A stretch of DNA of 48,978 nucleotides, from assembly GCF_001194135.2 (NCBI RefSeq), contig NC_069002.1, forward strand, positions 27,172,848 through 27,221,825, in the 5' to 3' direction. Of this stretch, positions 11,101 through 34,450 are shown piece after piece (position 1 is the first letter of the stretch; every line of letters begins with the position of its first letter). The DNA comes from Octopus bimaculoides (Eukaryota). The notes under the pieces are model-generated. The model had not been told where the DNA came from. It worked only from the letters and a program-made list of their open reading frames with translations, and ran no database searches. The position numbers were made by a program, and so were the translations under genes.

Positions 11101-11645
11101 CTGTATGTGTCCAAGTGGGACACATGCAGATAAAAAACTTGTCTGAATTCTTTAATATTGTGGTCCTACAAAAGAAGGCATCAACCATCGATTACATCAA
11201 CATTGAGAAGACAGATGTAACAGTGGCCCTGAATGAAATGAGTTCAAGCTCCGCAACTGGTCCCAATGGCTTCCCAGCTATTCTCCTCAAGCCATGTAAG
11301 CAGGCTTTGGCGAAACCACTTGATATACTTTTTCACAGCTCCCTTGCAAGTGGTAAACTTCCTAAAAAGCTAAAAGAAGGTATTATATGCTCTATCCACA
11401 AAGGTGGAAGCAGAGCAGAGGCCAAAAACTACAGGCCAATTTCTCTGACTCCACATATCAGCAGAGTCATGGAACGAACCATCAGAAAGAAGTTGATAAT
11501 ATTCCAAGAAGAAAATGACCAACTGAACAATATACAGCATGGCTTTCATCCAAGAAGAAGCTGCTTCACACAGCTCCTACAGCACTATGACTGGGTTTTG
11601 AAACAGCTGCTTGACCATTCAGATGTCAGTATGATATATCTTGAC
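11101..11645 (+). mobile_element. CR1/L2/Jockey-superfamily LINE reverse-transcriptase fragment
   Basis: SATGPNGFPAILLK..LAKPL..IHKGGSRAEAKNYRPISLT..MER..QHGF...RSCFTQLL..MIYLD, the N-terminal RT domains. Homology stops at YLD; no complete RT. Confidence 0.9.
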
Positions 11646-14816: not shown

Positions 14817-14977
14817 CTAGAGCAAAGCATCAACAACAATAATGGTAAACTGAAATAAATGATAATTACCAGAACTAGAACAATAATCTGGATAGAAATC
14901 TCCCAGAGACTTGTCTCGTTGACTTAAAATTTTCTGGAACTTTACCTTCCAACGCAGCGGATTGTATTCTGTATCTC
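14817..14977 (-). CDS. SOD-repeat protein gene, probable terminal coding exon with GPI-anchor-like signal
   Basis: ttacattttcag acceptor, phase 1. Encodes (G)DTEYNPLRWKVKFQKILSQRDKSLGDFYPDYCSSSGNYHLFQFTIIVVDALL* with TAG at 14817-14819: small residues (SSSG) then a hydrophobic tail. Confidence 0.8.
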
Positions 14978-15031
14978 CTGAAAATGTAAATTCAGTTTAA
15001 TGATTAATAAATTATCTTTGATAATTATAAA

Positions 15032-15257
15032 GTGGCAAGCTGGAAGAATCATTGGCAAGCCAAGTGAAATGCATAGCGGTAATTTGTCAGTCTTTGACTT
15101 TGCTTTTTATACTTCCGGTGGGGTTGATAAAATATGTGACATTTAATCTTTGGGGATTGATGTAATTGACTTAATCCCCTCCCTTTGTGCCAAAATTTGA
15201 AACCATTATTATCATTATTATGATTATAATTATAATTATTATTATTATTAATATTAC

Positions 15258-15326
<69 letters not shown>

Positions 15327-15578
15327 TACTATTATTATTATTATCATTATCATCATTATTAAGGTGGCAAGCTGGCAGAATCGTTAGCACGCTGGGCAAA
15401 ATGCTTAGCAGCATTTCATCATCTTTACATTTCGAGTTCAAATTCTGTCTAGCTCAACTTTGCCAGTCATCCTTTCAGGGGCCTATAGAATAAGTAATAT
15501 TTGAACCCTGGGGTTAATATAATCAACTTACTCTCATCTTCCCCAAAGTTGTTGGCCTCACGCAAGAGTTTGAAATCA
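15032..15578 (+). mobile_element. Two tandem SINE family B copies separated by (ATT)n at 15203-15360
   Basis: Heads at ~15032 (degraded) and 15361; the first ends CCAAAATTTGAAACC followed by the microsatellite. Confidence 0.75.
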
Positions 15579-15769
15579 ATCGTTACTGTAAATTCGTTAG
15601 AAGATTCTGCTTTTTCTTGCTTGTTTTTAATATATTTGAAAATACTAATATAATTAGAGTCTTGATTCATCAATAATGACTGGATTTTGATATTCTTCAA
15701 ATTAAGATGAAGAGAATACAAAATGAGCTTAACCTTTTCAAACAGCGAGTACGCTATATATTCCTAGAA

Positions 15770-15991
15770 CAGGGGTTTTCAAACTTTTTGATTTGCGGAC
15801 CCCTTTATATTTCAGGCTTTACCCTTATAAACGCTTATGAAATTTATACATAAATATTTGCTTAAAATAACATATATTTTTACATTTATTTATTTAACAT
15901 TATTTAACAAATAGGTTTATTGTCAATTAAAAGATTTCGATTAAAAAACATATATAAAATCAAATTGCGGACCACAGTTTGAAAACTCCTG
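15770..15991. mobile_element. hAT-superfamily MITE
   Basis: 16-bp TIRs CAGGGGTTTTCAAACT / AGTTTGAAAACTCCTG (15/16) and an 8-bp TSD TCCTAGAA at 15762-15769 and 15992-15999. Confidence 0.92.
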
Positions 15992-16227
15992 TCCTAGAAG
16001 ACACAAAAATGGTAGCCAAATGCTTTTGTGTTTATGAATGAAAATAATTATGCTTCTACTAATTAGTGAACTATAAATAGAAAACCATGTAACTGCCTGC
16101 TTTTGTGTCTCCCAGGAGTATAGTCAAAGAGTGTAAGCTCAACATGTTCTGAGCTGAAGTGAAGCATTGCTGTATTTTTGTCTTTTACCTTCACCGTTTA
16201 TTAGAAGAATTCAAAACTAAAACTTAC

Positions 16228-16340
16228 CCAGGAAGTACAGTTTTAATACTCGGCATTTATGTTGGATAGGCAAATGTTCAATTGATAAATGCCAGGCTTC
16301 CGTTTTTAAAGCTTTTGCTATGTCGTTAATTAAATCCACT
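16228..16340 (-). CDS. SOD-repeat protein gene, 113-bp internal exon (C-terminal domain)
   Basis: ttttctttcccag acceptor and G|GTAAGT donor. Encodes (K)VDLINDIAKALKTEAWHLSIEHLPIQHKCRVLKLYFL(G); phases 2/1 fit both neighbours. Confidence 0.85.
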
Positions 16341-16503
16341 CTGGGAAAGAAAAAGTCATTTGTTAGGAAAGTATATTTGAAATACAAGTTGAAATTTCAT
16401 TGATATTGATTGAGAAGTACAAGTGACATAAACAAAACAAATTTATAGTTATTGGAATACACACACACACACAAGTTATGTAAGTATAGACACACATACA
16501 TGT

Positions 16504-16541
<38 letters not shown>

Positions 16542-17318
16542 NNNNNNNNNNNNNNNNNNNNNNNNNNNNNNNNNNNNNNNNNNNNNNNNNNNNNNNNNNN
16601 NNNNNNNNNNNNNNNNNNNNNNNNNNNNNNNNNNNNNNNNNNNNNNNNNNNNNNNNNNNNNNNNNNNNNNNNNNNNNNNNNNNNNNNNNNNNNNNNNNNN
16701 NNNNNNNNNNNNNNNNNNNNNNNNNNNNATGCATATATGGGTACAGGACATAAAAAAAACGTTGAACACAATGAGAAATGGAAACAAAACAAAAACATAG
16801 AAAACGAACATTTTTTTCGAACAACAAAAGAAACAAACAGACAAACTAGACAGGCAACATAAAGAACATTCCCTTCATCAGTTGTCCCCATTCTCATTTC
16901 TCATTTTGTCTACGTTTTTTTGATGTCCTGTACCCATATATGCATGTATATTTTAAAACATTTATAAATTGCAATGAAAGCATATGCAGTGATTTTGGTC
17001 TCACTAACCTTCCATAGTTTGTTTCCTTTTTCCCCCCTCCCCACAATCTTGTTAAACACTAGCCACACTTATGTTGCCCACAGCAGTGTCTCCCTTAGTC
17101 GTGTGCTTGTTTGCACATACTTTTTTTATATAATTGGCACACAAAGGGAAAAAATGTGCTTACATGAAATTTTCAAAATAGTATCAAATTCTGTTAATTG
17201 AAGAAATTAATCAAATAACTGCTTAATAAATTAATCTACACACTTAGGAATGGTGTGCATTTTGTTAGGGAGCCAATATCAATATGGCATTTGAGCAAAG
17301 ATTAACTGCACGGATTGT

Positions 17319-17707
17319 GTGGAGGCGCAATGACCCAGTGGTTAGGGCAGCGGACTCGCGGTCATAGTATCGTGGTTTCGATTCCCAGACCGGGCGTTGT
17401 GAGTGTTTATTGAGCGAAAACACCTAAAGCTCCACGAGGCTCCGGCAGGGGATGGTGGCGAACCCTGCTGTACTCTTCCACCACAACTTTTTCTCTCACT
17501 CTTACTTCCTGTTTCTGTTGTGCCTGTAATTCAAGGGGTCAGCCTTGTCACACTATGTCACACTGAATATCCCTGAGAACTACGTTAAGGGTACACGTGT
17601 CTGTGGAGTGCTCAGCCACTTGCACGTTAATTTCACGAGCAGGCTGTTCCATTGATTGGATCAACTGGAACCCTCAACGTCGTAAGCAATAGAGTGCCAA
17701 CAACAAC
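17319..17707 (+). mobile_element. SINE family C1, full-length (tRNA-derived head, (CAA)n end)
   Basis: A box TGACCCAGTGG (17331-41) and B box GGTTTCGATTCCC (17374-86). Body matches 12941-13240. Confidence 0.88.
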
Positions 17708-18788
17708 CTGCATGGATGTGCTCACATTTGGCAAATGGAAAATTTGCGCACAAGTAAATTTCTACAAGGACCAACAGAGCAAGAAATTAGAGAGAACATT
17801 GGTCCACAACAATTCTAGTTGTAGTTGGAATCATTTATATTTCATCCGATTGGCCAAATTCTTCTCTTATATGAATTTGCACCAAAGAGACAATCAAACC
17901 AATAATTTCAACTCGATGCTTTGCATTGATTGAAAACTGACCAATCAACATAACTCCACAACAACCATCTTGGTGAGCCTAGTAACACCAATAAAAGACC
18001 CTGTTTAGTGGAATTTTGCCTGGAAAGAACTGCTAGCTCTGTGTGTGTGTGGTTGTTTTAACAACCGGTTTTATCAACATGCACACTCACTTTCATACTT
18101 CCTTGCTTCCATAGACAACCAGTCAAGAGAACATAACAAATCTCTGTCTCTCAACTAATCTACTCTTCAACAAAACTTCTATTTCAGAAACAATTTAGAT
18201 TAGAAATTTTGTTAATTCATTGCTACTTACATATATTGACTTTTGACTTCATTGTTCCATACAACTACACACAGCAATTATACCAAATATGAGCAATTAT
18301 GTATAACAAAGATCTTTTGTGTGAATTAATATAATTCACTGCTTGTACAGACACATGAAACCTTTGATTGCATTTTTATTATATTGCTTACGTACACAAG
18401 AAATGAAGCTCTTTGTTAGAAAAGAACATTTCGTCAACTATTGCCGTAAAACCAATCAGACTGACACATCTCGATATAATGTACTTTTTAATGAATAAAA
18501 ATGTTGTTTTACACATAGTCACCTCTCGTCAATTTCTTATTCAGAAATATCCTCCACTCAACAACTTATTTTATTTCTTTTTGTTTAACAGAGAAGCCAG
18601 CTTCAGGTTATGTCAAACTGATGATTTCTAATAAGAACGAAATGGTGCTACACATGATTGTCTATGACTAGAAATCTTTGTAATGTATATGAAAATATTA
18701 AATGTGTTTATTCTATGGTGTTCTTAAAGAGTATATTGATGATAACACGGACAAAGGGTCTAATGAAAAAATGATGACCTGAGCTGCA

Positions 18789-19554
18789 GTAAATTGGAAA
18801 GTGCTTTATGAGATAAGGGCCAAAGCAACTGAGATTTCTTGGTCATGTGATGAGGAAAGAGGGCCCAAAGAGAGTTTAGTGATGACTGGAAAGAAAAAAA
18901 AGAAATGAAGCAGAGGAAGAAGAAAGATGATCTGGTTGTCAAGCTTGAGGAAATGGTTGGAAGAAAGAGACATTAAACATCAGGAATTGGAAACTGTCAC
19001 AGAAAATAAAGAACAGAGAATTGTTGCAGGACATGACAGAAATTGTTTTGTGAGGTAAGGGCCAAAGCAACTGAGAGAGCCTGGAGAATTTAGTGATGAC
19101 TGGAAAGTGGGCCTGGAGAACTTAGTGATGACCGGAAAGATTGAAAGGAAAGGAAATAGAGGAAGGGGAGGGATGAACTTGAAGGGTCAAGCTTGAATTG
19201 GTTGGGAGAAAGAAGGATTAAATATTAGAAAGTGGAAAGGGTACAGAAGACAAAGAACAGAGAATTGTGGCAGGACCTGATAGAAACTGCTTTGTGAGAT
19301 AAGGGCCAAACAACAGAAATATCTTGGTTATGTGATGAGGAAAGCGGGCCTGGAGAATTTAGTGATGAGCGGAAAGATTGAAAAGAAAAGAAACGGTAGA
19401 AGGAGAAGGGTGATATGGATGTCAAGCCTGATGAACTGGTTAGAAGAAAGAGGCATTAAACATCAGGAATTGGAAACTGTTACAGAAAATTAAGAACAGA
19501 GAATTGTAGCAGGACATGATCGCTAATCTCCTACACTCTGGACATGGCACCTAA
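18789..19554 (+). mobile_element. RTE (BovB-like) LINE 3' ORF end, as three tandem ~245-bp copies
   Basis: Decayed translation IRAKQLRFLGHVMRKEG..LVMTGK...RELWQDMIANLLHSGHGT*. Units restart near 18789, 19037 and 19281. Confidence 0.85.
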
Positions 19555-19821
19555 CATTCTATACATATTATTCCTTTGTCTTTGATTTAATATTCAAGCT
19601 TTTAATCCTGCCAAGATTTACCTCGAAATCATTATCTCCCTTACGATAACTGGCCACCAGGGTGCACCACATAATGGATAGAAAGCATTTCTTTTTCCTT
19701 TGGATTAAGGTTAAACTATATATAAACACTTCACTGCTGACATAATTCTGGTTATTAAGCTAACATTTTCATAACTTATAAAAATAAACAAAGATAAAAG
19801 GTGATATATTTGTATAATTAC

Positions 19822-19948
19822 TTGTCAAATGGTTTAGTTCTCCAGTATGACATTTCAACATAGGGTTGCTTCAGAGGGTTGATATCTGCACATGTCATCA
19901 TTTTTTCTCCTTGATTTTCTGAGAAGAACACGAATGATCGGCCATAAA
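19822..19948 (-). CDS. SOD-repeat protein gene, 127-bp internal exon
   Basis: gtgtttttctag acceptor and AA|GTAATT donor. Encodes (V)YGRSFVFFSENQGEKMMTCADINPLKQPYVEMSYWRTKPFD(K), phase 1 in and phase 2 out. Completes LPLFGEWS-VYGRSFVF. Confidence 0.92.
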
Positions 19949-20357
19949 CTAGAAAAACACAAACAAAACAAAATAGATTACAATTAAAAATGATTCATGA
20001 AACAACATTCTTTTGATGATTAGAATATAAACAGTTTATATAGTACAACATCAAAATCACTGTATGGTGGACACATCAGCCTTTTAAACACACACACACA
20101 CTGTTGTTGTTTTTGTTATTGTTTAGCCCCATGAGGGCCCTGATTGAGCAGACTTATGATCAATGACATTCCAGTTATCGCCATCACATCTATATTTCAA
20201 GTGTTAGAGTACTTTCGATAACATTATCCAATTGTGTTTTTCTTAGGGTTGTAGGGTATGATTTGAGTGAAATTTGGCTCCTATTTCTAACATGTCTATC
20301 AACCACTCATGGATGTGCACCTAGATTCATGTATATTCTTTTGGTCATACACTAATC

Positions 20358-20448
20358 ATGCAGAATTTGAACTCAGAACATAAGGACGGATGAAATGCCG
20401 CCAAGCATTTTGCCCATTATGCTAACAATTCTGCCAGCTTGTTGCCTT
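20358..20448 (-). mobile_element. SINE family B head fragment
   Basis: GAATTTGAACTCAGAAC..CTAACAATTCTGCCAGCT..GCCTT. Confidence 0.7.
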
Positions 20449-20462
20449 AATGACGCCGATGA

Positions 20463-21246
20463 TGATGATCATCATCATCATTTAACGTCCATTTTGTATG
20501 CTGGTATGGGTTGGATGGTTTGACCAGGGCTGGCATGCTGGAAGGCTACACCAGACTCCAGTCTGATTTGACATGGTTTCTATGGCTGGATGCCTTATCT
20601 AACACCAACCACTCCAAGATTGTTATGGGTGCTTTCACCCATTACATCCAAGGGCATAGGTGCCATTTGCATGACACTGGTATCTGCTACAACTGCGATT
20701 TTGCTTGGCTTGATGGGTCATCTTCTCAAGCATGACATAATGCCAAAGGCCTTGGTCATTGCTTCCATGAGGCCTAGCACTTGAAAAGTGCCTCAAAATC
20801 ACAGTCATTGCCTCCACGAGGCCCAATGCTCGAAAGGAGTTGAGCCATATTGCTTCTATTAGGCCCAATGCTTGAAAGGTGCTTTTAACGTGCCACCAGC
20901 ATCTGATACGATTGCAATTTCATGTGGTTTGATGGGTCTTCTCAAGCACAGCATATCACCAAATGTATTGGTCACTAGTCATTGCCTCTATGAGGCCCAA
21001 AGCTCTAAAAACATGCTTCACCACCTTGTCCTATGTCTTCCTGGGTCTATCTCTACCACAAGTTACCTCCACAGTTAGAGACTGGCACTTCTTTACACAG
21101 CTGTCCTCATCCATATGCACCACATGACCATACCAGTGCAGTCGTCTCTCTTGCACACCACATCTGATGCCAAACTTTTATCTCAAGATACTTACACTCT
21201 GTCGAGCATTCACACTGACATTACACATCTAGCGAATCATGCTGGC
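20463..21246 (-). mobile_element. RTE LINE 3' fragment (ORF end, repetitive 3' UTR, (GAT)n tail)
   Basis: Minus strand ASMIR*MCNVSV..RQS..GIRCGVQERRLHWYGHVVHMDEDSCVKKC...GRDRPRKT. The UTR ends in the same GGTTGG..TTAGGAAGGGCATC..CCAACCCATGCCAGCATGGAA..(GAT)n module seen at 23.7 kb and 39.4 kb. Confidence 0.85.
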
Positions 21247-21248
21247 TT

Positions 21249-21288
<40 letters not shown>

Positions 21289-21290
21289 GG

Positions 21291-21328
<38 letters not shown>

Positions 21329-21515
21329 AATGATAATAATAATAATAATAATAGTTTCTAATTTAGGTAGAAGGTCATAAATTTGTGAGAGAAAGTTAGT
21401 TAATGCAATCAGCTCCATTACTTGATACAGAAATCAATACAGCAGGATATCAATTCTATTTTTTTTTTTTTTTAATGAGACAGCTGACTTAAAGGAATTT
21501 GTTTGGGATACTTGC

Positions 21516-21657
21516 CTGACCATTCTCCAAAAAGTGGTAGATTCTTATCAACATAGAAGAAACCATTTTCTCCAAGATTGTAAGTTTCATGTTTAGCTGA
21601 TAAATCACCAACAGCACATCTTTCTTGATTGCTAACATCACATTCACCATAACCATT
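21516..21657 (-). CDS. SOD-repeat protein gene, 142-bp internal exon with GC donor
   Basis: ttctttctctttcag acceptor. Encodes NGYGECDVSNQERCAVGDLSAKHETYNLGENGFFYVDKNLPLFGEWS and ends at CAG|GCAAGT; phase 0 in, phase 1 out. Confidence 0.9.
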
Positions 21658-22408
21658 CTGAAAGAGAAAGAAATCAATAGGTTATTTATACTCTATCAGT
21701 GGAAGGGATCCTTATATATATCTAATATATTTCATTTTAACAGCCAAGGGAAATAACCCATTCATTTTCCTAGATCATTTGGTATGAATCAAATTGAGTA
21801 TGTTATGTTTATTAGTATTTGAACTGTTAGAGTTATTTTCACAATTTATCCAGTACAATCCTTAAACAAGTAAATAGTATTCTCCTAAACAATAGATCCA
21901 CTTATTTCGGTTAGTGAGTTATTCGCGAATATACCAACACAAGGGCTGCTGATGGTAATATTCTCTGGGAATGCATAAAAGCCCTTTTCAGAGTTAATTA
22001 CTTTGAATTGTTATTATCTCATATCTGATTAGCCTGTTATTATGCAACATGCTTCACGATTTTAGTATACATACCTTATTAGTATTTCCTCCTATGTTCT
22101 ATATACTCTGGGGACGCATTAAAGCCCTTTTCAGGGCTACTTTATTTGAATTCTTACTAAAGGGTAATTAATTTCATGTTATTACATAACTGATGTCACA
22201 ATTTAGGTATTCATAATTTATTGGGAATTCCTAAAATCAAAATCCTGTGTAAGACAGTTTGGTATTCTCAATAAATGCACGAAAACCGTTTTAAGGGCTA
22301 CATACTTTGTATTGCTGTTATTGGATTAGCGAAACAATTATGACAATGGAACCAAGGGATAAGCCCCGCTTTCCCGGGAATTACCAGGTACATCAGCTAG
22401 TATATATA

Positions 22409-22638
22409 TTGGGTTGTCCGGAAAGTTCATGCCGATTTTTAAAGGAAAAAAAAAAAGGTCAATAAATACTTGCCATTACATTTTTAATCAACCAAATATG
22501 AACCATTTTGTTGCACAATGCATCTCCATCTTTCCTTTAACTTGAAAATACTCTTTTCCCAGAATTGAGGTGGTTTCATGGCAAATAAGTCGAAAGGTAA
22601 GCTACTATAAATCGGCATGAACTTTGCGGACAACCCAA
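22409..22638 (-). mobile_element. mariner deletion derivative (MITE)
   Basis: 30-bp TIRs TTGGGTTGTCCGGAAAGTTCATGCCGATTT / AAATCGGCATGAACTTTGCGGACAACCCAA with TA on the left. The internal remnant reads FWEKSIFKLKERWRCIVQQNGSYLVD* (mariner transposase C-terminus). Confidence 0.9.
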
Positions 22639-22670
22639 GTAGAAGAGTTCAGGTGTTTTATGTTCTATTT

Positions 22671-22960
22671 TGGTGTTTCTCAACCCTTTTGTTACCTATG
22701 GACCCCTTTGATTCTTATTTTACTCAAACGGACCTTCTTAGCCATTTGATGTTTAAAAGACCCTATTATGTTTATATAATTAAATTTTATTAGGAATTGT
22801 ATAAAAAATTTTTTTTATATTTTGTGTATAGAAGAAGTATAACCAATTCATTGCACATAAATTTTAACAAAATCTTATATAAACCCCCTAAATTCATATG
22901 GAGCCTCAAAAGTTTGTATGGATCTTCAAGGGCAATAAAGACCCTGGTTGAGAACCACCA
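22671..22960. mobile_element. hAT-superfamily MITE
   Basis: TIRs TGGTGTTTCTCAACC / GGTTGAGAACCACCA (14/15) and an 8-bp TSD TTCTATTT at 22663-22670 and 22961-22968. Confidence 0.88.
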
Positions 22961-23040
22961 TTCTATTTATTCAAATGTTTGAATGGAAGGGTACTAAAAT
23001 ATTAAGTTTAGAAGCCCTAAAATTCACTCTATAATTGTCC

Positions 23041-23245
23041 ATGGGCATACAACATAATGGTTAAGAGTGCAGGTTACTAACCCCAAGATTCCAAGTTCAA
23101 TTCCAGGCAGTGCCATGAATAAATAATAATGGGTTGGGTTCAAAATTCCACCAGGACACCTGAAGAAGGCTGGAGAGTAAATCAGCCAAAATCTTGTGGT
23201 AACAACAAACAAGATGAGGACAATGTAAATAATGTAAATAATGTT
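23041..23245 (+). mobile_element. tRNA-headed SINE-like element with a Penelope-type hammerhead-like tail
   Basis: Decayed A box ..CATAATGGTTAAG and B box AGTTCAATTCC, an AAT spacer, then GACAC-CTGAAGA-A-GGCTG..CAGCC-AAAAT and an (AATGTAAAT)2 end. Confidence 0.6.
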
Positions 23246-23609
23246 GAATAGAATTGCTTTCATATTTTCACTCCATGAATTTCCAAAGCTTGGTTCAGCT
23301 AAGACTAATAGAGAGTGGGTCCCATAATTTAGATAGGTAAGCTAACTGACCATTCTATGTTCATATTTCTCCTGACGGACCTTTAACCCAACCACTCACT
23401 TTTCACATTTTCAAATTAAATCAAGGTCTCACAAAACATCATTAAAAATACATCAAAAATTGTGGGACGGCCCTCAACTCTTCTTTAATCTCATCATGGA
23501 AACAAAGGTAACCTAAAGCATTTGCTATGTAAATACAGCAAAATATAAAAGATATGTCCTTGCATATAAGCTTGTCCCTTGCATCCCTTTCCAGTTGAGT
23601 ATTCCTAAT

Positions 23610-23900
23610 CTTGTGGGATCATGGGTGCTAGTGCTATGTAAAAAAGCACCCATACCAGTGCCACGTAAATGCAACCATGCCGGTGCTGCTTAAAAGCACC
23701 CAGTACACTCTATAAAGTGGTTGGCATTAGGAAGGGCACCCAGCCAAAGAAATTACACAAAAACAGACATGAAGCTTGGGCAGCTCTTCAAATAGACCCA
23801 CTACATGTCAAACCATCCAACCCATACCAGCATGGAAAATGGACACTAAATGATGAGGATGATGATGATGATGAGGAGGAGGATGACGATGGTGATGATT
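23610..23900 (+). mobile_element. Non-autonomous element or LINE remnant with the RTE 3' UTR module and (GAT)n tail
   Basis: Same 3' module as 20463-20630 and 39410-39590, preceded by short GCACCCAT/GTGCC..GTAAA repeats. Confidence 0.7.
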
Positions 23901-23918
23901 AACTTAACACTTTCTTAC

Positions 23919-24137
23919 GTTGGTATTGACATCAAATGGGTTATACAGTTTTCCGACGCGACTACACGCCCTCTGTACAGCTTCTTCAGTGTTTGCCCTC
24001 CATTCGTCCTCCATCTGATTCTGCCTGTTGTTGTGGCCCTCACCAGAATCCATTGTGTTATAAGCTTTGGTGTCATTGTCATTGAACTGCTGTTCCCATA
24101 TTGGATTGGAAAAGATCTTCCATTCGTGATTGTTGGT
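23919..24137 (-). CDS. SOD-repeat protein gene, 219-bp internal exon
   Basis: ttctttttag acceptor and AAC|GTAAGA donor, phase 0/0. Encodes TNNHEWKIFSNPIWEQ...QRACSRVGKLYNPFDVNTN (HxWxI and C..xG..YNPF motifs). Confidence 0.9.
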
Positions 24138-24254
24138 CTAAAAAGAATTTTATAAATTCATAAAGAACATTTCAATAGAATCAGTGGAACGCACTTCGTT
24201 TAGGACATTCATTTGGCAATAAATAAAGAAATCATTCAATGAATAAATCAGTAA

Positions 24255-24260
24255 ATAAAT

Positions 24261-24300
<40 letters not shown>

Positions 24301-24530
24301 AAAAGAAAGAAAGAAAGAAAGAAAGAAAAAGAAAGAAAGAAAAAGAAAGAAAGAAAAAGAAAGAAAGAAAAAGAAAGAAAGAAAGAAAGAAAGAAAGGAA
24401 GGAAGGAGGGAAGAAGGGAACAAAGGAAGGAACAAAGGAAGGAACGAAGGAAGGAAAGAAAGGAAGACTAGGAAATAAATAAGAAAAAGAAAGGAAGGAA
24501 GGAAGGAAAGGAAAGGAAGAATAAGAAATA
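24255..24530. repeat. Compound (GAAA)n/(GGAA)n microsatellite
   Basis: Seen directly in the sequence. Confidence 0.95.
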
Positions 24531-25038
24531 AAAACAAAAACATTTGAAATATACTCCCAAATATAATTGATAGAACTGTGTACATATTCTCTCTTGTGAG
24601 GACGTCTTGTGTATAGTTCTGCAAATTATATTTTCCATGTCGGTCACACTGACGATTGGCAGATATTTATGTAATATAAATGATAACAATGAAACCATGG
24701 TATGTGACTAATCATTATATTTTGTAGCTTTTCATTTGTCTTGCTTGCTTTACATTCTGGCGTTTGCCGAATTTTCTTGAGAACAAAGTTTCTTAGTAGT
24801 CAGACCATATGGGGTCTACATTTAGCATATTAGGAGTTCACCTAATGGGCATTCCTCTTATATGTATGTAATATAATTTTCTGAATCTTCAGATTTTTTT
24901 CAATATGCTAGGCTACTGGTTTGAATTGATATTAATCTAATTAGTATCAATTTTTTACTCTTATCATATATATATATATATATATATATATGGGCATCCA
25001 GTTGTAGAAACTCTGCCAAATCAGATTGGAGCCTGGTG

Positions 25039-25165
25039 TAGCACTGTTTGGAACCGCTCGTATACTCCGGAAGGTTTTCGAAAAATAAGAGGTGTTACCT
25101 TAGTTCACTGTTAGTGAACAGCTGACACCATAGTACATCTCCAGCATTAGAAGCTGTGCAAATGC
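25039..25165 (+). mobile_element. R4/Dong-like (restriction-like endonuclease) LINE 3' end, 5'-truncated
   Basis: ALFGTARILRKVFEK* plus short UTR, followed by (AAT)n. Nearly identical to 25878-25975. Confidence 0.75.
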
Positions 25166-25209
<44 letters not shown>

Positions 25210-25218
25210 TAATAATAA

Positions 25219-25732
25219 ATGCCCGGATGCAGTACCAGGCAGTAGCNNNNNNNNNNTGTCTTGGTATAAAAGATGGGCTACAGCAAATATTCTGCTTAAT
25301 ACCACAGATTTGCTTGTCAGTTGTTTGACCGTAACCAGTTGAACATGTCCCTTGGTGGCTGACAATATGTGCATCTCTGATCATGAGCAGAAGTAGTTAG
25401 GGAGCATCATAGCCATATGTTGAGAGGAGTTCTTTGGGGTTTGAATAATTCACCTTTGGAAACATGGGTGTTTTGCTCAACACCCTTAAACAAATCTTAT
25501 TCAGGGACCTTTTGAGCCGGATGGGCTACTTGACCTGAAGAAAATTCTAACTGAGCCCCACATGAGAGGTCATGCACTGTTTATCTTGATATGAGATCAC
25601 CATGTCGCACACATATGGTTGTGATGCATGTGCCTGGTGTACCCTTATCAGACGGGTAGTCATGATGGGTACACTGGGCTTCGTATATTTTACCCCAGTG
25701 TCACTTTGATGGCATGCACTGCTCTCTCACTC
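25219..25732. repeat. Unclassified GC-richer interspersed element bounded by (AAT)n tracts
   Basis: Sharp composition boundaries, an (AAT)n tract at each end, and no long ORF. Confidence 0.45.
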
Positions 25733-25766
25733 AATAATAATAATAGTAATTAATAATAATAATAAT

Positions 25767-25975
25767 GATAGAAGTACGTGGAACAAATAGAGGCTGCAAT
25801 AAGGGTGGAGCACTATCTTGAGAAGTACAAGGAACAAATAGGGGCTACAATAAGGGTGAAGCACTTGCAGAAAATAGCACTGTTTGGAACCGCTCGTATA
25901 CTCCGGAAGGTTTTCGAAAAATAAGAGGTGTTACCTTAGTTCACTGTTAGTGAACAGCTGACACCGTAGTACATC
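25767..25975 (+). mobile_element. R4/Dong-like LINE 3' end within (AAT)n
   Basis: EKYKEQIGATIRVKHLQKIALFGTARILRKVFEK*, the LQK..LLGTA.ILR terminal motif of RLE LINEs. (AAT)n on both sides. Confidence 0.8.
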
Positions 25976-26108
25976 TCACTCAATAATAATAATAATAATA
26001 ATGATAATAACAGTAACAATGATAATGGTGGTGGTAAAAAGATTAATTTGTTTTTCTTACAGGTGTGTATAGTAAATGACAGTTAACAAAGGATTTTTTT
26101 CTTCTTAC

Positions 26109-26186
26109 CATGTGACCTTCTTTGCTGTGAACATCTATATAAACCCAAGTTTCGGTTGTATGGCCATCCCCGTAGACATATTGCCA
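26109..26186 (-). CDS. SOD-repeat protein gene, 78-bp internal exon
   Basis: tttgtttcag acceptor and ATG|GTAAGA donor, phase 0/0. Encodes WQYVYGDGHTTETWVYIDVHSKEGHM, continuing GYVQM in the same way as the G.V.F.Q...T.I.V strands of the other repeats. Confidence 0.85.
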
Positions 26187-26284
26187 CTGAAACAAATTAC
26201 AGCAGTGAGGGTAACAAAAAAGACATTGAGGTGAAAAAACTAATTAACAGAAGAGAGAAAAAGAATTGGGGAGTTGAAGCAAGT

Positions 26285-26479
26285 GTTGTTGTTGTTGTTG
26301 ATAATGATGATGATGATGACAATGAAGATAGTGGTGGTGGTGGTGGTGGTGGCGGTTTGATGTTATTGTTGCTGCTCCTGTTGATGTCATTATCGTCTTT
26401 GTTATTGTTGATGCCACCTCCGCCAGCCCTGACACCGATAACAACAACGATGATGATGATGATGGTGATGATGGTGATG

Positions 26480-26511
<32 letters not shown>

Positions 26512-26550
26512 GGTGATTATCATGGTGATGATGGTGGTAGTGGTGGTGAG
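26285..26550. repeat. Compound (GTT)/(GAT)/(GGT) trinucleotide microsatellite region
   Basis: Seen directly in the sequence. Confidence 0.9.
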
Positions 26551-27040
26551 AATGGTTAGGGTTTTAATGACTATTTTGTCCTACAGGTAGATCAGTCATG
26601 ATTGTATGGCCAGACATACGACAAAATACAAACCAACTGTGGTCATTCCATTCTTACCATTTAAAAACTCACTTTAACCATTTAATAACCCGTTTTAACA
26701 ATTAAAAAACTCATCTTAAAAATTTACTGTTTTGTATGTCTTATTTTGGTTAAAATGGTTCTTTTCTGCAAAGTAATTCTTACAGAAACATTTTAATAAA
26801 ACTTTGGAAGAAATTTGCTATTTGGGTAGGAACTGTTTATCTACATATATGACCATCACTGCTCACCTTTTCAGTGATGTGTGTGGGTGTGTGAGAGAGA
26901 AAGAGACACAAAGGGAGATAGAAAAGAAAAAAGTAAAAGAGTTATAGAGAAAGAAGTGCATATATATATATTATATTATATTATATTATATTATATTATA
27001 TTATATTTTATTATATATATATATTATTATATTATATTTC

Positions 27041-27222
27041 AATTTCATGTTACACATGTTTCGTTACAGAATAGGAGTTACAAAGTATGTATACATGTAG
27101 AAAACATATTTGGGATCTCCTTTGTCTAAAGAATTACAGATAGGAGATCCCTAACACGTTTTCTACATGTATATATACTTTGCAACTCCTATTCTGTAAC
27201 AAAACGTGTGTAACATGGAGTT
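27041..27222. repeat. Long inverted repeat (foldback), arms ~80 bp at ~90% identity
   Basis: CATGTTACACA..GGGATCTCCT (from 27046) pairs with AGGAGATCCC..TGTGTAACATG (to 27217); spacer ~18-20 nt. Confidence 0.92.
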
Positions 27223-28511
27223 AAAAATATACCATATTTCCTGGTCATTGTCTTAGTATATACTTACTCGGCAAATATAATTTACCAGAACTTTCAACTG
27301 GTATGTAAGCTACACTTGAAATAAATCATCTATATACATATATTTGATTGCTGGAACATACTATGTGTTACATCTTTAAGTTATAAGATGTAGCACAGAT
27401 GTGTGTGTGTGTATATGTGTGCGTGTGCATGCTTATGTGCATGCATGCTTGTTTGCATGCATATGCATGTGTTAATTTTCTTTGAGTCATATTCAAGTTC
27501 ATCTTAAGACAGCAGACGAAGTAACAACAAGAATGGTTGCCAATGAAGTAACAACACTTTCTGAGTTAAAAGAGTTCCTGGTGTTTTAATATGTGGCTGA
27601 GTTGTTGTGTTGGTTGAGCTGTTGGCACACACACCAAAGTGTGCGCATCTATTCCCCAAATGAATCTCAGATGGAGATTCTTTGGAATGTCATACAAATC
27701 TGTAAGTCATAAGAATATGTATATATGTACTTGAAGGTACTATATGACAGGAATTATTGGATGATTGTCAAAAGTTTTGTCTTTATGCCACATATCAAAG
27801 CAAGAAGTTCAACATGCCAAACAAATTATCTCTCCACCAAACGAAACAACATCAAGAGAAATTCCATAACTGGGAATCAAACCTTTGTTGAAGATTTTGC
27901 TTGTCAAAAGCAGCACGCCATTGAGAATGTACAAACACACACATGCACACATATACACACACACATGTATGCATGCATATATATGTGCAATTATGCAATT
28001 ATATATATATATGCAATTATATATATATAATTAAAATCAAAATTAAAGCAGAGAGTTTATCTCACGATTCGAGTTTCATGCCAGTGCAATCATCATTAGA
28101 TCTTGCCTGATGATCACACTGGCATGAAGCTCAAGGCACACTACACAAGCTCTCAGTTTTAATTTTAACAACAAAAGCATATCCTCTACAACATGTATTG
28201 AGCACTCCTTTCTCATTTGTTTGACATTAATAACATATGACTATATATATATATACATACACACACAAGAATGAATGAAACTGATTCTAATTTAGGCACA
28301 AAGCCACTAATACTTTGAAAAGTGGGGTTTGGTAAATTTAATCTGCCCCAGTATTTGTCTAGTACTTTACTTTATCAACACCTGAGGGATGAAAATTGAC
28401 CATGGTAGAATTTGAACTCATAACATAAAGATTAATAACAAATACCGCTACCCACTTTTTTCTGCCGACCAACTGCTCTTATATATAATGATATAAATAT
28501 AATAAAATAAA

Positions 28512-28759
28512 TGTGCCCTTTTAAAGCCTAGCCAGGCTCATGGGCCCGGCTTTCCAGTTTCAATGGCGTATGTGTTCCCCAGCTGGACGGGACGCTAGTC
28601 CATCACAGCATTACTCATTTTTGCCAGCTGAGTGGACTGCAGCAATGTGAAATGAAGTGTTTTGCTCAAGAACACAACGCGTTGCCCGGTCCAGGAATTG
28701 AAACCACAATCTTACAATCATGATGCTGACACCCTAACCACTAAGCCATGCACCTCCAC
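28512..28759 (-). mobile_element. SINE family D (C2-type head and body, V-domain-like 3' part)
   Basis: Head GTGGAGGTGCATGGCTTAGTGG..GGTTTCAATTCC, C2 body, then GATGGACTAGCGTCCCGTCCAG (V-domain-like by recollection). Matching fragment at 47180-47290(+). Confidence 0.75.
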
Positions 28760-28806
28760 AATGTAATATAATATATAATATTTTTAAAGATATATTTTCA
28801 ACTCAC

Positions 28807-30740
28807 CATTTGCACATACCCATAAATTGAGCCCCACAAATCAATTCGTGCTTCCCATCGTTCAGCCTTAGAATAATCAAAAGAGAAGTTACCACATCCT
28901 TTCAGGTTCTTATAGTCATAAGACACAGCCATCGCTCTCTCCATTACACTTGCAGGTCCGTAAAGACACAGATTATAATCTCGCATTTTTCTTCTATCCT
29001 TTCCGCGGTCTTCAAAATAACCAAATTTGCCACTCATGTCTCCCATGGGATATTGACTTGGAGATCCTTGTCCAACTGAGGGTAAACTCTCTGGAGGAAT
29101 GCTAAAAGGGTTCCAAATTGATGAAAGTGCTGTCTTGGAGCAGGATTGATGACTATCTTCAACTGCAGGATTAGAATAAATTGCCCAAGAATTTATTCCA
29201 TTATTTAAGCCATCCATATTCATAGAGACCATGGGTGCATCGAACTCAGTTTCTTGTGTAAAGGTTATTTTACCTTGAAGCTGAGTTTTAGAATCAATCA
29301 GGTGTGGCATTGTGGCTTGGTATGGCCAGTGGCGGTAGATTGTTGCACATGCAAGTCTGTTCTGTCTGTTTGTATCAAATATAACAACAGAAGTTCCTTC
29401 TACACTGTAGGGTCCATGGAGTGGCAAAAAAGTTGTTGTCATGAACGTCTTCTTGGCTGGTTGCCGTTTAGCACCAGATCGAATTTGTATTCCTCCCAGT
29501 CGTTTCGTTGTATCACCAACTGCACAATGAAAACCACGTTCTCTGGTACAGGTTTCATTATATTGTCCATCTAGACGAAGATTAAAAGGGTTGAACACAT
29601 TCCCTGTTGAACTGCATCTTCGAGCACTATCCTTGTCATTCCAATCAGTTGACCTCCGTTCTGCAATTTTCCAAACATGATCTGTAGTTGGTCCAGACCC
29701 ATCACTGTAATCAAGTTCAAAATAGATCGATGTATCTGACATAGCATCGGATTTACTTTGTCTCAGCATCATATAACCAAGCACGGGGTACCAAAATTTT
29801 GCCATAAGAATCACTGTGTCTTCTGGATAGTTAACATTGGCACAAAACCAGCGACTACCATCTGTTCTGTGTACAACAAAAGATCGTCCAATGATGCTAT
29901 ATTCTTCAAACAGGGGTAAGTTCCAGTCCCAATATACTTCCGAGAAGCTGTCACGACCATTCAACTTACCAAATTTACCACTCAAATCACCAACTTCATA
30001 TTGGTCATTAGTACCATTTCCAGGTGGTGGTGATTCACTTTTTTTGACTTGAAAAGGATTCCAGTGACCAGAAATTTCATCGTTTGAACATTGGTCATTT
30101 AGTGAAATGCGTTGAGGAACTGGATATACATGTATATGGTAAGCAGAAGCACGATCATTGAGGTCGTTGAAGTTCACTTGAAGAATTGTTGGATCGTATG
30201 GTGAATCTTGTTCAAAACGCACATAACCATAAGCTCCGTCACCATCAAAGTTGACCTGTGCTGTCTTATGTGTGTATGTTTGGATAAAACTACAAGCAAT
30301 CACTTCATCGTTTTCATCAACAATTCCGATCCATTTACCAATAATGTTGTTAGTACCAGTCAACCATATATTTGGTTCCACCCAAGCTTCTCTGGCATCA
30401 TATGGTAAATTACCTACAGGTAACATAGGTAGGTTCTCCACCCTATTTCGGGGTTGGTAACGAGTTTTCAGTGAACGACACATGGTAGCAGATTCTGTTC
30501 TGCTAGTTGGATGAAAGAAATACCATTTATAAGAAGCCCGTTGTTGGCTTCCTGGGGCCATGTAGAACAAATCTGAATAAATAGTTGTATAATTAGATTG
30601 CTCATGCTGCCGGAAAATAACACGACCACCTATGGAATTTTGAAGACGTGCATAAGCTGTTACATGACGTCCTTTAAACATAATAGTGGCACAGGCTGGG
30701 TCTTTTACAGACCGGTTAGGCTTTAGAAGCAGAGTGTAAC
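28807..30740 (-). CDS. SOD-repeat protein gene, 1934-bp main exon (end of repeat 1, repeats 2-5, start of repeat 6); CSRP-like
   Basis: Stop-free frame for 644 codons; ttttttcttctacttcag acceptor and ATG|GTGAGT donor. Repeated SOD motifs: YHIH..GHWNP..EVGDLSGKFG..LPLF..SIIGRSFVVH..GSRWFCA; CAVGDTTKRLG..LPLHGPYSVEG..RLACATI; PMGDMSGKFG..LCLYGPASVM. The ORF track covers 28798-30681 only because it starts at an internal ATG and reads into the donor. Confidence 0.96.
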
Positions 30741-30945
30741 CTGAAGTAGAAGAAAAAAATTTAATTTAGCGTTTGGAGTAAAAGTGACCAATCAAATTAA
30801 ATTAAATCCAAATCCAAAACAACAAAAAAGATAACGAGTTTAAAAGCATGTTATTTACTGAGCTCTTAATTAACAGGGATCTATTTTTTCATGTTTATAC
30901 AACAGTTACATATATACATATGGGTGTGTGTGAGCATGTGTGTGG

Positions 30946-31002
<57 letters not shown>

Positions 31003-31113
31003 AATATATCAATTAAGGTGAAAGACAAAATTCAAAGAATTCACTATTCTTAAAACAAAGGAAAAACAGAAAGGGACAAAAGTAAATAACAAAATAAAGA
31101 ATAGATCACAAAC

Positions 31114-31205
31114 CTAGAATTCCGTTTAAGCCCCAAAGGTTCACTGTACGTGCAGTACTTTGTTCTTCATTGCCAAGAGTAACAGTTCCGGTTTCGGGTG
31201 TAAAC
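31114..31205 (-). CDS. SOD-repeat protein gene, 92-bp internal exon
   Basis: ataattctag acceptor and G|GTTTGT donor. Encodes (R)FTPETGTVTLGNEEQSTARTVNLWGLNGIL(G), phase 2 in and phase 1 out. LWGLNGILG-YTLLL parallels the LPLFxxxSIIGRSxV strand of SOD folds and joins the next exon in frame. Confidence 0.8.
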
Positions 31206-32584
31206 CTAGAATTATTATGCAAAGAAAGCCTTCATATTGTCATTGAATTGAATCATGTCATTAATTAAAATTAATTTGATTACATTAAGTTAAATTAAGT
31301 AATTATATTAATTATAAGCCAAGAATCAGAAAAAAATAAAGATGTGTACAGATACACACACATATTTATATATGTGCACACATGCACACATACACATCCA
31401 CAAATATTGATACGTTTAGATGGATATAGTATAACCATCTCGCATAGACTTAAGTAACTGAAAAGTGTCTATTTACGAACAAGAAAAATAACAATTTATA
31501 AGGGATAAGAGGTTAATAGGTTATTCACATATATGCATATATACACATATACAAATATCAATACGTTTATATGGATATAGTATGACCATCTTGCATAGAC
31601 CTAAGTAGATGAAAAATCTCTGTTTAAGAAAAGTAACAACTTATAAGGGATAAGAGGTTAATAGGTAAGGATATGAAAATAAGAAAACAAAATAAAAATT
31701 TATAGAAAATAATAAGAAATACATATAACCTACATTTAAAGAGAGGCTATTAAAATTTGAGGTAGAGAATAGATAAAGGTAACCTGAAAAGAGGAGGTAG
31801 TAGGTATGGGGGTAGTGAGGGCAGTTAAAGGTATTCAGACCAAAGAGATTCTATAAGTTGTAATGTTACAGGTGCTATTATATATATAGGATTTTATAGT
31901 TTCTAGGGGGTATGTAATTAGGAGACTTGCTTACATAAAAGCCATTACAAATATATATGAAATGATCAGTAGGGTAGAACATCATAGAAAGGAACAAATA
32001 GTTTAATCACCAAAATATAGTGAAGTCAGACAAACTAGGTAGGAGTTATCATGGGATAGTAACTACATATAGCACACCATATACCATAGCATATAGCTTA
32101 TAATATATGCAATGCAATTTAATTCACCATATAACATAATATGCCATGATTTTATTATATTTAATACTCGAGAGTAAGTTTACAATGGATACGACACCAA
32201 AATTAATTTCCGCCATCAAATTTCAAGTATGCCACCTATGATCGTTAATCTCAAAAATACTTAAATGTATGGGTGACGATATGCACACATGATTTCCTTA
32301 GGTCTAATCTATTATTAATCAGGTTGTTCTTGTCCCTGTACTTAAAAATCTCATAAGTTTCCATAGAGCACAGCTCACATCCGTATCGACTATCTCTATA
32401 AGGCTGATGTAATGATTGCATTGTTCAATTAAATGGAGCTGCTTGAAACGGTCGTACTGCATCACTTCTTAATATCCTGTTGCTTATTTTGATTTTATTC
32501 ACCTTACTTTGAGGTGTGCGGATAATACCAGACTGAATTGGTGCTTCAACTTAAGTACCTAATTCAAATAAATCTCAATTATTC

Positions 32585-32833
32585 ATTTATATACTCTTAC
32601 TCTTTACTCTTTTACTTGTTTCAGTCATTTGACTGGACCCATGCTGGAGCACTGTCTTTAGTCGAGCAAATCGACCCCAGGACTTATTCTTTGGAAGCCT
32701 AGTACTTATTCTATTGGTCTCTTTTTGCTGAACCACTAAGTTACGGGGACGTAAACACACCAGCATTGGTTGTCAAGCGATGGGACAAACATAGACACAC
32801 AAACACACTTACACATATATATATATATATATA
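32585..32833 (-). mobile_element. SINE family A copy (3' half)
   Basis: Reverse complement of 4230-4436. Confidence 0.85.
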
Positions 32834-33042
32834 NNNNNNNNNNNNNNNNNNNNNNNNNNNNNNNNNNNNNNNNNNNNNNNNNNNNNNNNNNNNNNNNNNN
32901 NNNNNNNNNNNNNNNNNNNNNNNNNNNNNNNNNNNNNNNNNNNNNNNNNNNNNNNNNNNNNNNNNNNNNNNNNNNNNNNNNNNNNNNNNNNNNNNNNNNN
33001 NNNNNNNNNNNNNNNNNNNNNNNNNNNNNNNNNNNNNNNNNN

Positions 33043-33114
<72 letters not shown>

Positions 33115-34020
33115 GGTATATCTAGAAGACCCAAAGAGTGGCAGGTAACGCTAAGTATGTGCTATGGACAGACAATAGTTAAACTCTTGGTTCAATAGTG
33201 ATACGAGTGAAGAGTCTAACAGGGTATTTTATTAGCATGCATATATATATATTAGACAAAATAAGATAACAAAACCAAGGCTGTGAGGATTTTTCAGGAC
33301 GTTTATAAGGAAAAAGATATAGATATAGTTTTACAGCTGTTTCTGGGATATTATGGATATCCTTCATCAGAGACGATGTGAGATGGTTAAATGGAGGTAA
33401 ATATTTGAGTTCGAAATAAGGGATTATTATGGAAGAGGAGGAGATAGGGAATATAGAGGGAAATAAGAGAATGAAAGTAGAAATAAAAATATAAAATATA
33501 TAAAGATATTGTAGTTGCAGTTCCATTATTCAAGGAAAGTGGTGCTAAAATGTTTCCTGTACATGGTATGTAAGTTCCACTAGTAGTTCATGTTTAGTCC
33601 TTTTAAAGAATGGAACCGTGGATTTTGTGTTGCTCATTCAAATGGGATTCCAGTTTGTTGTGATAGGACACTTTTGAACTCAGAATGCACAGAGCTGGAA
33701 CAGACAGTGCAAAGCATATGTCCTGATCCTTAACAATTCTGCCAATCTACCCACTTTATTGGTTCTAATTTTTATTGATTTCAAAATTGAATAAAAATCA
33801 ATAAAAATTTATTTTTATTGATTTTAAAACAAAGTTTATTGTGTTGGAATTCAACTCAGAGCACATAAAATTGATACAAATATCACTGGGATACTATCTT
33901 GCACTCTAATGATTCTGCTAATAGTTTTTCCTGCAGCAGGATTAATCCTTATGTAATTGCACCAGTCACTGTTTTATGATTTTTTTTCTGCTCATATATG
34001 ACACCTAATGCCATTATATA

Positions 34021-34297
34021 AAGGGCAGTTGTGGCAGTGTGGTAAGAAGTTTACTTCCCAACTATATGGCTGTGGGTCAATCCCACTGCATGCACCTAGG
34101 GCAGGTGTCTTCTACTATAGCCTCAGGCCAGCCAAAGCTTTGAAACCTAGCAGTTCAGCAAAAGAGATTGATAAAATGAATACTTGGCTACAAAAAAAAA
34201 AAAAAAACCATACTGGTCTTGAATCATTCAAATAAAATTCTTCAAGGCAATACTCCAGCATGGTCTGAAGCAAGTAAGCGATAAAGGATAAAAGATA
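34021..34297 (+). mobile_element. SINE family A with tRNA-like head, internally deleted and old
   Basis: A-box-like TGGCAGTGTGG and B-box-like GGGTCAATCCC, then the family A body jumping to the 3' part. Confidence 0.7.
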
Positions 34298-34410
34298 GTT
34301 GTTTGTTAAGTCTATAATTCACATCTAATTCAAATTTAATGTCCTTCAGATAATATACAGGATAAGACAAAAAGCAAAACCAGGAATTATTGGAGAATTA
34401 AATAACTTAC

Positions 34411-34450
34411 CTTTCACCAATATAGCGTTCATTGCATTTATCTACTTCAC
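34411..34450 (-). CDS. SOD-repeat protein gene, most upstream visible exon (partial; 5' part lies in N-gap 34451-34863)
   Basis: Reads (x)EVDKCNERYIGE(R) and ends at AG|GTAAGT. The phase-2 end matches the phase-2 start of the 31205 exon, giving CNERYIGER-FTP, which resembles the C..xG..(F/Y)NP segment of the other repeats. Confidence 0.6.

Follow-up and report, generated by a model that had tools for sequence, protein, structure and literature searches.

A copper-only superoxide dismutase repeat protein of Octopus bimaculoides with one predicted copper site among six repeats

Copper-only superoxide dismutase (SOD) repeat proteins (CSRPs), also known as cusr or SOD4, received their name in 2018 and were the subject of a review in 2026 (PMC13017621). 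Most animal CSRPs are built of six repeats connected by very short linkers, and the count of intact copper sites differs between animal groups: the oyster protein has intact sites in repeats 3 to 6, and those of a moth and a tardigrade have none (PMC13017621). Recombinant CSRP from Crassostrea sikamea shows SOD activity (PMC12217663), and the frog (Xenopus) protein is required for tail regeneration by an unexplained mechanism (PMC13017621). The review asks whether single repeats bind copper and what role the copper-less repeats play; the latter have been proposed to act as molecular chaperones or structural partners (PMC13017621). Cephalopods appear neither in Table S1 of PMC13017621 nor in the taxon table of PMC12217663, and a literature search linking cephalopods or octopus with CSRP or copper-only SOD returned nothing relevant. 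Here, we analyse a 48,978-nucleotide stretch of the Octopus bimaculoides genome (hereafter the window), the minus strand of which carries the gene LOC106879360. We propose, with a probability of roughly 0.8, that this gene encodes a CSRP orthologue whose third repeat alone binds copper and dismutates extracellular superoxide, the copper-less repeats being kept as folded domains. The repeats are numbered R1 to R6.

A 655-codon open reading frame (ORF) on the minus strand (28801-30765) contains the stretch 29831-30282, in which an earlier note on this DNA had recognised a copper-only SOD repeat. With the large exon lying in this frame as the query, 185 matches of roughly 1000 residues each were obtained across many animal phyla, at 27-37% identity over nearly the full length. 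Fish 'cusr' proteins were among them, as was Patella caerulea SNE40_017798 (E = 1e-150, 96% query coverage), a CSRP according to Table S1 of PMC13017621. The best database match was the O. vulgaris protein P0001 (1039 residues), which is 93% identical to the window protein and whose 90%-identity cluster includes the O. bimaculoides RefSeq entry XP_052831622.1 (LOC106879360, 'uncharacterized protein'). Among the defining features of the family, six tandem SOD-fold repeats (4-12 in the family, typically 6), the lack of a zinc site, a short loop VII and the disulfide cysteines were found, and the optional one, a four-histidine site with the E110/D113 pair (pattern HHCHEDHRC), was found in R3 only. 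Judged by its sequence, the window gene is the O. bimaculoides orthologue of the animal CSRPs, with a predicted product of ~1040 residues (~115 kDa) which, by analogy, is probably secreted or anchored by glycosylphosphatidylinositol (GPI).

The likeness to the Crassostrea gigas (A0A8W8N9N3) and Patella caerulea (KAK6174543) CSRPs extends over the full length (E to 1e-150). The three proteins have in common six SOD-fold repeats with short linkers, a C-terminal domain and the disulfide cysteines; every repeat lacks a zinc site and has a truncated electrostatic loop, and R1 and R2 are copper-less in octopus as in all CSRPs examined. The difference lies in the copper sites, which occupy R3-R6 in the oyster protein and only R3 in octopus and cuttlefish.

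In order to compare the repeats with one another, a joint alignment was made of the six octopus repeats, the six of a chiton CSRP, the core of Candida albicans SOD5 and human SOD1 (UniProt P00441), SOD5 residues being taken from the PDB-search alignment. The copper-only signature appeared in R3 alone. Among all PDB sequences, the closest to R3 was SOD5 (4n3t, E = 6e-8), the two aligning as YHIH with YHVH, GHWNP with NHFNP, YEVGDL with HEVGDL and VVHRTDGSRWFC with VIHANNGTRLNC. SOD5 residues H75, H77, H93, H153, E110 and D113, its active-site arginine and its disulfide cysteines are all matched in R3, which has no H71 equivalent and a Glu at the H80 position. Furthermore, the H120-to-R143 interval, corresponding to the electrostatic loop, counts 5 residues in R3 versus 22 in SOD1. 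R3 thus shares with human SOD1 and SOD3 the Greek-key beta-barrel, the copper ligands H46/H48/H63/H120, R143 and the C57-C146 disulfide, but not H71 and H80, and hence has no zinc site. A bimetallic Cu/Zn SOD reading of R3 was rejected on account of the missing H71 and H80 and of the truncated loop.

Analysed by itself, R3 scored 45.7 bits against the Pfam family Sod_Cu (E = 1e-11, cut-off 28.9 bits). An AlphaFold2 (AF2) model of R3 was computed from a 41-sequence alignment covering molluscs, echinoderms, hemichordates, arthropods, annelids and vertebrates, and was predicted with high confidence (pLDDT, for predicted local distance difference test, 92.6; predicted template-modelling score (pTM) 0.86). 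When this model was submitted to Foldseek, the top PDB match was SOD5 again (5cu9, template-modelling score 0.73, E = 4e-8), with many Cu/Zn SODs ranked below it. In the same alignment, residues H49, H51, H73, E96, D99, H138 and R144 of R3 were invariant. Since the Pfam E value is 1e-11 and seven catalytic residues are invariant across phyla, the sequence similarity of R3 is homology and not chance. The resemblance to SOD5 (4N3T, 5CU9) thus includes the four histidines, the E110/D113 pair, the arginine, the disulfide, the absence of zinc ligands and the short loop VII. SOD5, however, is a single domain of ~25 kDa, whereas R3 is one of six domains in a ~115 kDa chain, and their identity is only ~28%; from its sequence, R3 would work like SOD5 while standing outside the single-domain class.

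Most of what the earlier note had said of R3 stands. Its interval is in frame on the minus strand and is close to exact for the domain as delimited here (30276-29824), and the Glu in place of a zinc ligand, together with the absence of H71, which it had likened to SOD5-type enzymes, belongs to a copper site that matches that of SOD5 residue for residue. Its guess of a molluscan source was also right. YHIH and the His of VVH were found where it had placed them, and the GSR arginine that it named is present; only the position of GHWNP has to be corrected, as 30061-30069 covers just G-H-W and the full motif occupies 30069-30055.

The five remaining repeats present a different picture (Table 1). 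As had been claimed, only one of the six repeats has a full copper site: R4, R5 and R6 have lost all four histidines, and R1 and R2 have no site, R1 (taken from the O. vulgaris orthologue) having a His at the H48 position only. No equivalent of H71 or H80 was found in any of the six repeats aligned with SOD1, and ~17 residues of SOD1 loop VII are missing from all of them. R2-R6 of the window all have equivalents of C57 and C146, as does R1 of the orthologue. With Sod_Cu, R5 reached 28.1 bits, R4 17 and R6 14, all under the cut-off, and R1 and R2 were undetected by Pfam at any threshold; the predicted SOD fold of these two is based on the alignment and on the secondary structure of the AF2 model. 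For the complete O. vulgaris orthologue, this model (pLDDT 88.7, pTM 0.87) contained six domains rich in beta structure, a small C-terminal alpha/beta domain and a hydrophobic helix at each terminus. R1, R2 and R4-R6 are comparable in this respect to oyster dominin and to the copper-less arthropod and tardigrade CSRPs, which likewise combine a SOD fold and cysteines with an absence of metal ligands (PMC13017621); unlike these, the octopus pseudo-enzyme domains are fused to one intact domain.

The replaced motifs that the earlier note had listed, HVWKIA (R4), SWAIY (R5), HEWKIF (R6) and YKWYFF (R2), are indeed present. Its statement that the other repeats keep their cysteines and a GD motif holds for R4-R6 (AVGD, PMGD and AVGD, respectively) but not for R2, which has VGN, nor for R1, which has no such motif. 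Six repeats can be delimited in the alignment, as it had counted, although five and a half are readable in the window, half of R1 falling in a gap. Not every repeat is confined to the same exon: R6 extends across five, beginning in the last part of the large exon and ending at 19872.

To survey the distribution of intact sites, 106 full-length homologues were aligned to the window protein, and the nine key positions in R3-R6 were read, with a chiton CSRP that has all four sites intact as the reference; as the alignment was automated, a few residues are possibly misplaced. Among the 107 proteins, an intact four-histidine site was found in no repeat in 1 protein, in one repeat in 16, in two in 19, in three in 60 and in all four in 11. 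R3 (94/107) and R5 (90/107) retained the site most often, followed by R4 (72/107) and R6 (22/107). The other molluscs have two to four sites: mostly four in bivalves and the chiton (three in one ark clam), three in Patella, Lottia and Gigantopelta, and two in Haliotis and Plakobranchus. The R3-only state was observed in the window protein, in O. vulgaris and in P0002, a cuttlefish-type protein; outside the cephalopods, it was observed in Daphnia pulicaria and in one further sequence. Ten proteins, including those of spiders, have the R5 site only. The octopus, O. vulgaris and cuttlefish proteins each retain the nine key residues of R3 and have lost the sites of R4, R5 and R6. Because the P0002 cluster includes the cuttlefish Acanthosepion pharaonis, the one-site state is, as far as these sequences tell, older than the octopus-cuttlefish split. 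No second cephalopod CSRP was present among the 120 matches listed.

Two other lineages in this survey had unusual sites. In sea-star CSRPs (P0012, P0013, P0018, P0022, P0037, P0115), the copper ligands, Glu, Asp and Arg of R3 are kept and both disulfide cysteines are replaced (HHAHEDHRY), so that the sea-star R3 would be an intact copper site without the otherwise universal SOD disulfide. In sharks and rays (P0019, P0023, P0048, P0053, P0059 and others), R6 keeps its four histidines, and the active-site Arg is changed to L, F or I. Most CSRPs of cartilaginous fish have lost the R5 site; the opposite is seen in bony fish, where R5 is intact and R6 lost.

In addition to the loss of three sites, two changes distinguish the cephalopod proteins from the oyster and Patella CSRPs. 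In comparison with other molluscs, R2 lacks ~20 residues (window ~30420-30330), only 'VGN' being left of a region that elsewhere holds an extra cysteine pair and a GDL motif. In R6, an acidic insertion of ~35 residues follows WKIF in octopus and cuttlefish and is missing from every other aligned CSRP; in the O. vulgaris AF2 model, it forms a low-confidence loop (808-816) and then a long helix (821-839).

It was also observed that R2, R4 and R6 have in common an extra cysteine pair just before the (E/A)VGD motif and that R3 and R5 have in common GTxDQYEVGD-type loops. The likeness of the even repeats on the one hand and of R3 and R5 on the other suggests that the repeat array expanded by duplication of a two-repeat unit.

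The ratio of nonsynonymous to synonymous substitution rates (dN/dS) was determined for each repeat by the Nei-Gojobori method, between the window and the O. vulgaris coding exons extracted from the genome (Table 1). R3 gave by far the lowest ratio, with 98.7% amino-acid identity. Nonsynonymous and synonymous differences numbered 2 and 11 in R3 versus 77 and 50 in the other repeats pooled (Fisher p = 0.002). When the cuttlefish-type protein was compared, R2 and R4 (79% identity each) were as conserved as R3 (75%), R5 and R6 being at 62% and 65%. With respect to chiton, scallop and limpet, the identity was highest for R3 (46-56% versus 23-39% for the other repeats). Our reading of these sequence comparisons is that R3 is the most constrained domain and would retain the ancestral catalytic role, and that the other repeats would be under weaker yet real purifying selection within cephalopods, as for structural or binding domains. 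The dN/dS values (0.04 for R3 versus 0.22-0.42) and the conservation of R2 and R4 are consistent with the earlier suggestion, drawn from sequence, of one catalytic domain on a pseudo-enzyme scaffold.

By analogy with SOD5 and oyster CSRP, the protein would be exported and R3 would acquire one copper outside the cell. The four histidines of R3 are expected to coordinate this ion, and cycling between Cu(II) and Cu(I) would disproportionate superoxide without zinc. The Glu and the Asp, as relics of the lost zinc site, may orient the copper histidines in the manner of E110 and D113 in SOD5. The Arg would adjoin an active site that the shortening of the electrostatic loop leaves open, and the disulfide would brace the loop. 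The five copper-less barrels could pack on R3 as a scaffold which holds, presents or stabilises it, or could bind partners.

Several points weigh against catalysis by R3 as the main role. The oyster CSRP that was assayed has four intact sites, and activity of the one-site octopus protein would be an extrapolation from it. The dN/dS contrast comes from one species pair with few substitutions in R3, and the signal-peptide and GPI-tail exons lie outside the readable sequence of the window. Moreover, CSRPs without any copper site persist in moth and tardigrade (PMC13017621), so that the family has at least one copper-independent function, which could dominate in octopus too. The main job of the protein might accordingly be the binding of microbes or matrix, or signalling of the kind implied by the Xenopus regeneration phenotype, with a minor or regulatory copper site in R3. 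Such a role would suit a protein in which five of the six domains are copper-less and two of these, R2 and R4, match R3 in octopus-cuttlefish identity, and it has a precedent in the frog CSRP, needed for tail regeneration, and in the copper-less CSRPs of arthropods and tardigrades (PMC13017621). We nevertheless regard it as unlikely, because R3 retains its nine key residues in octopus, O. vulgaris and cuttlefish alike, whereas the sites of three neighbours have gone, and the low dN/dS of R3 is hard to explain if the copper site is dispensable.

A much less probable explanation is that R4-R6 bind metal by alternative ligands, which would give the protein more than one active site. A conserved His is found three residues before the H46 position in R4 (DHVW) and R6 (NHEW), the Asp-83 equivalents are kept and R4 retains the Arg. 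However, the canonical histidine positions of these repeats are taken by K, A, V, F, Y, I, S or L, among which there is no usual copper ligand, Tyr possibly excepted. Other species have the extra His in intact repeats too, outside the site itself, and AlphaFold3 copper docking of oyster CSRP revealed no non-canonical sites (PMC13017621).

Finally, the idea of a decaying pseudogene or of an assembly or annotation artefact, with the intact R3 as a leftover, was rejected as having next to no likelihood. In its favour, part of exon 2 and perhaps the final exon are lost in gaps, the RefSeq termini are odd and the dN/dS of the C-terminal domain is ~1.15. Against it, the readable coding exons are open, with conserved splice sites that include a GC-AG intron common with O. 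vulgaris; each of the six repeats has a dN/dS under 0.45, AF2 predicts the structure with confidence, octopus and cuttlefish have retained one architecture since they diverged and the cuttlefish-type orthologue appears to occur as a spliced transcript. This orthologue was found as a 4.3-kb contig in the Logan assembly of a sequencing run and, as this contig is intron-less, the cuttlefish-type CSRP appears to be transcribed.

The octopus CSRP is a one-site cephalopod addition to a described family, not a new kind of protein, and it leaves the existing knowledge of the family unchanged. The pseudo-enzyme scaffold is in essence the published view of CSRPs, a structural or chaperone-like role being already put forward in PMC13017621. 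What is new here is the coleoid CSRPs themselves, absent from the two surveys, the R3-only state common to octopus and cuttlefish, R3 as the most constrained domain, and the continued conservation of the copper-less repeats, in keeping with a structural or binding role; an 'uncharacterized' octopus gene gains a name and a candidate function. As a CSRP with exactly one predicted copper site, it is the simplest natural test case for copper binding repeat by repeat, as activity and copper stoichiometry can be assigned to one domain without mutating three others. The copper-less repeats are strongly conserved over a deep divergence, and therefore a function is worth looking for. More tentatively, coleoids may have cut their CSRP down to one catalytic centre before octopus and cuttlefish separated, and the copper-less repeats, especially R2 and R4, may have been re-used for a new non-catalytic function, for example in ligand or microbe binding at the cell surface; the protein would then be a natural fusion of one enzyme and five pseudo-enzymes whose parts can be separated experimentally.

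The gene lies in AT-rich DNA with microsatellites and 12 runs of N. A tblastn search with P0001 traced a multi-exon gene on the minus strand from ~34450 to 14817, and the splice junctions were then resolved by eye (Table 1). XP_052831622.1 agrees with this model from 'DKCNERYIGERF' through the C-terminus when the two are compared by eye. The intron after exon 21657-21516 is of the GC-AG type (donor GCAAGT at 21515), and an identical donor is present in O. vulgaris (L001 55427).

Table 1. Features of the O. bimaculoides CSRP gene in the window. Residues are those at SOD1 positions H46, H48, C57, H63, H80 (E110 in SOD5), D83 (D113 in SOD5), H120, R143 and C146; dN/dS is given versus O. vulgaris.
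Feature	Position	Strand	Residues	dN/dS	Basis or remark
CSRP gene (LOC106879360), partial	14817..34450	minus			tblastn with P0001, splice sites, RefSeq match
Coding exon	34450-34411	minus			truncated by N gap 34451-34863
Coding exon	31205-31114	minus
Coding exon (large exon)	30740-28807	minus
Coding exon	26186-26109	minus
Coding exon	24137-23919	minus			contains R6 acidic insertion
Coding exon	21657-21516	minus			GC donor
Coding exon	19948-19822	minus
Coding exon	16340-16228	minus
Coding exon	14977-14817	minus
R1, C-terminal half only, copper-less	30673..34450	minus		0.22 (66 codons only)	AF2 of orthologue; no Pfam match
R2, copper-less, both Cys kept	30277..30672	minus	Y F C R P N V V C	0.40	alignment; AF2 beta domain; no Pfam match
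R3, sole domain with full predicted copper-only SOD site	29824..30276	minus	H H C H E D H R C	0.044	PDB and Pfam matches, AF2, Foldseek
YHIH of R3	30141-30130	minus			His codons 30138-30136 and 30132-30130
Disulfide Cys codons of R3	30090-30088 and 29844-29842	minus
GHWNP of R3	30069-30055	minus			His codon 30066-30064
YEVGDL of R3	Glu 29997-29995, Asp 29988-29986	minus
VVH of R3	His codon 29871-29869	minus
GSR of R3	Arg codon 29853-29851	minus
R4, copper-less, Asp, Arg and four Cys kept	29329..29823	minus	K A C V A D F R C	0.31	alignment; Pfam Sod_Cu E = 0.008
R5, copper-less, Asp and Cys kept	28867..29328	minus	A Y C I P D S L C	0.42	alignment; Pfam Sod_Cu 28.1 bits
R6, copper-less, five exons, Asp and four Cys kept	19872..28866	minus	K F C L A D F M C	0.42	alignment
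C-terminal non-SOD alpha/beta domain and tail	14817..19871	minus		1.15	AF2 of orthologue; no Pfam match

At the 5' end of the gene, coding exon 2, whose product comprises the signal-peptide end and the N-terminal half of R1, is for the most part lost in the N gap 34451-34863. As a consequence, two RefSeq models of O. bimaculoides differ at their N-terminus, one starting with MTMNFILRTSREYL and the other with an unrelated leader of ~125 residues. In O. vulgaris, 40 kb separate exon 2 from the upstream exon 1, which encodes 13 residues; no counterpart of exon 1 was found in the window, and it is probably outside. O. vulgaris P0001 itself starts MIKAVFTFLLLLYVSPTTA, has an N-terminal hydrophobic signal and ends in a hydrophobic helix (1018-1038).

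At the 3' end, the GPI-type hydrophobic tail of O. vulgaris (ILTGSIVLSMVVFLLKGFFL) is encoded by a separate last exon, 1.1 kb downstream. In the window, blastn with this O. vulgaris exon gave low-complexity matches only, and a sliding match of the terminal-exon peptide on the minus strand below 14900 gave nothing. Both our gene model and RefSeq read past a conserved GTAATT, a probable donor (near 14868), into NYHLFQFTIIVVDALL, with a stop at 14817. The true C-terminus is probably absent from the assembly; the missing exon may lie in the N gap 12380-12940 or may have diverged.

The non-SOD alpha/beta domain which follows R6 (window 19871-14868; P0001 ~930-1001) is found in all aligned CSRPs and is only 61% identical between the two Octopus species. 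With the cuttlefish-type protein, the window sequence shares 60 of 91 residues in this domain and that of O. vulgaris 47 of 91, which indicates that the O. vulgaris domain is the diverged one.

Elsewhere in the window, other long ORFs at 43345-44246 (plus strand) gave no convincing Pfam match. Downstream of the gene, a 217-codon ORF (11025-11675, plus strand) showed a weak match to Pfam RVT_1 (E = 5e-5, below the cut-off) and, from this similarity, is probably a retrotransposon remnant.

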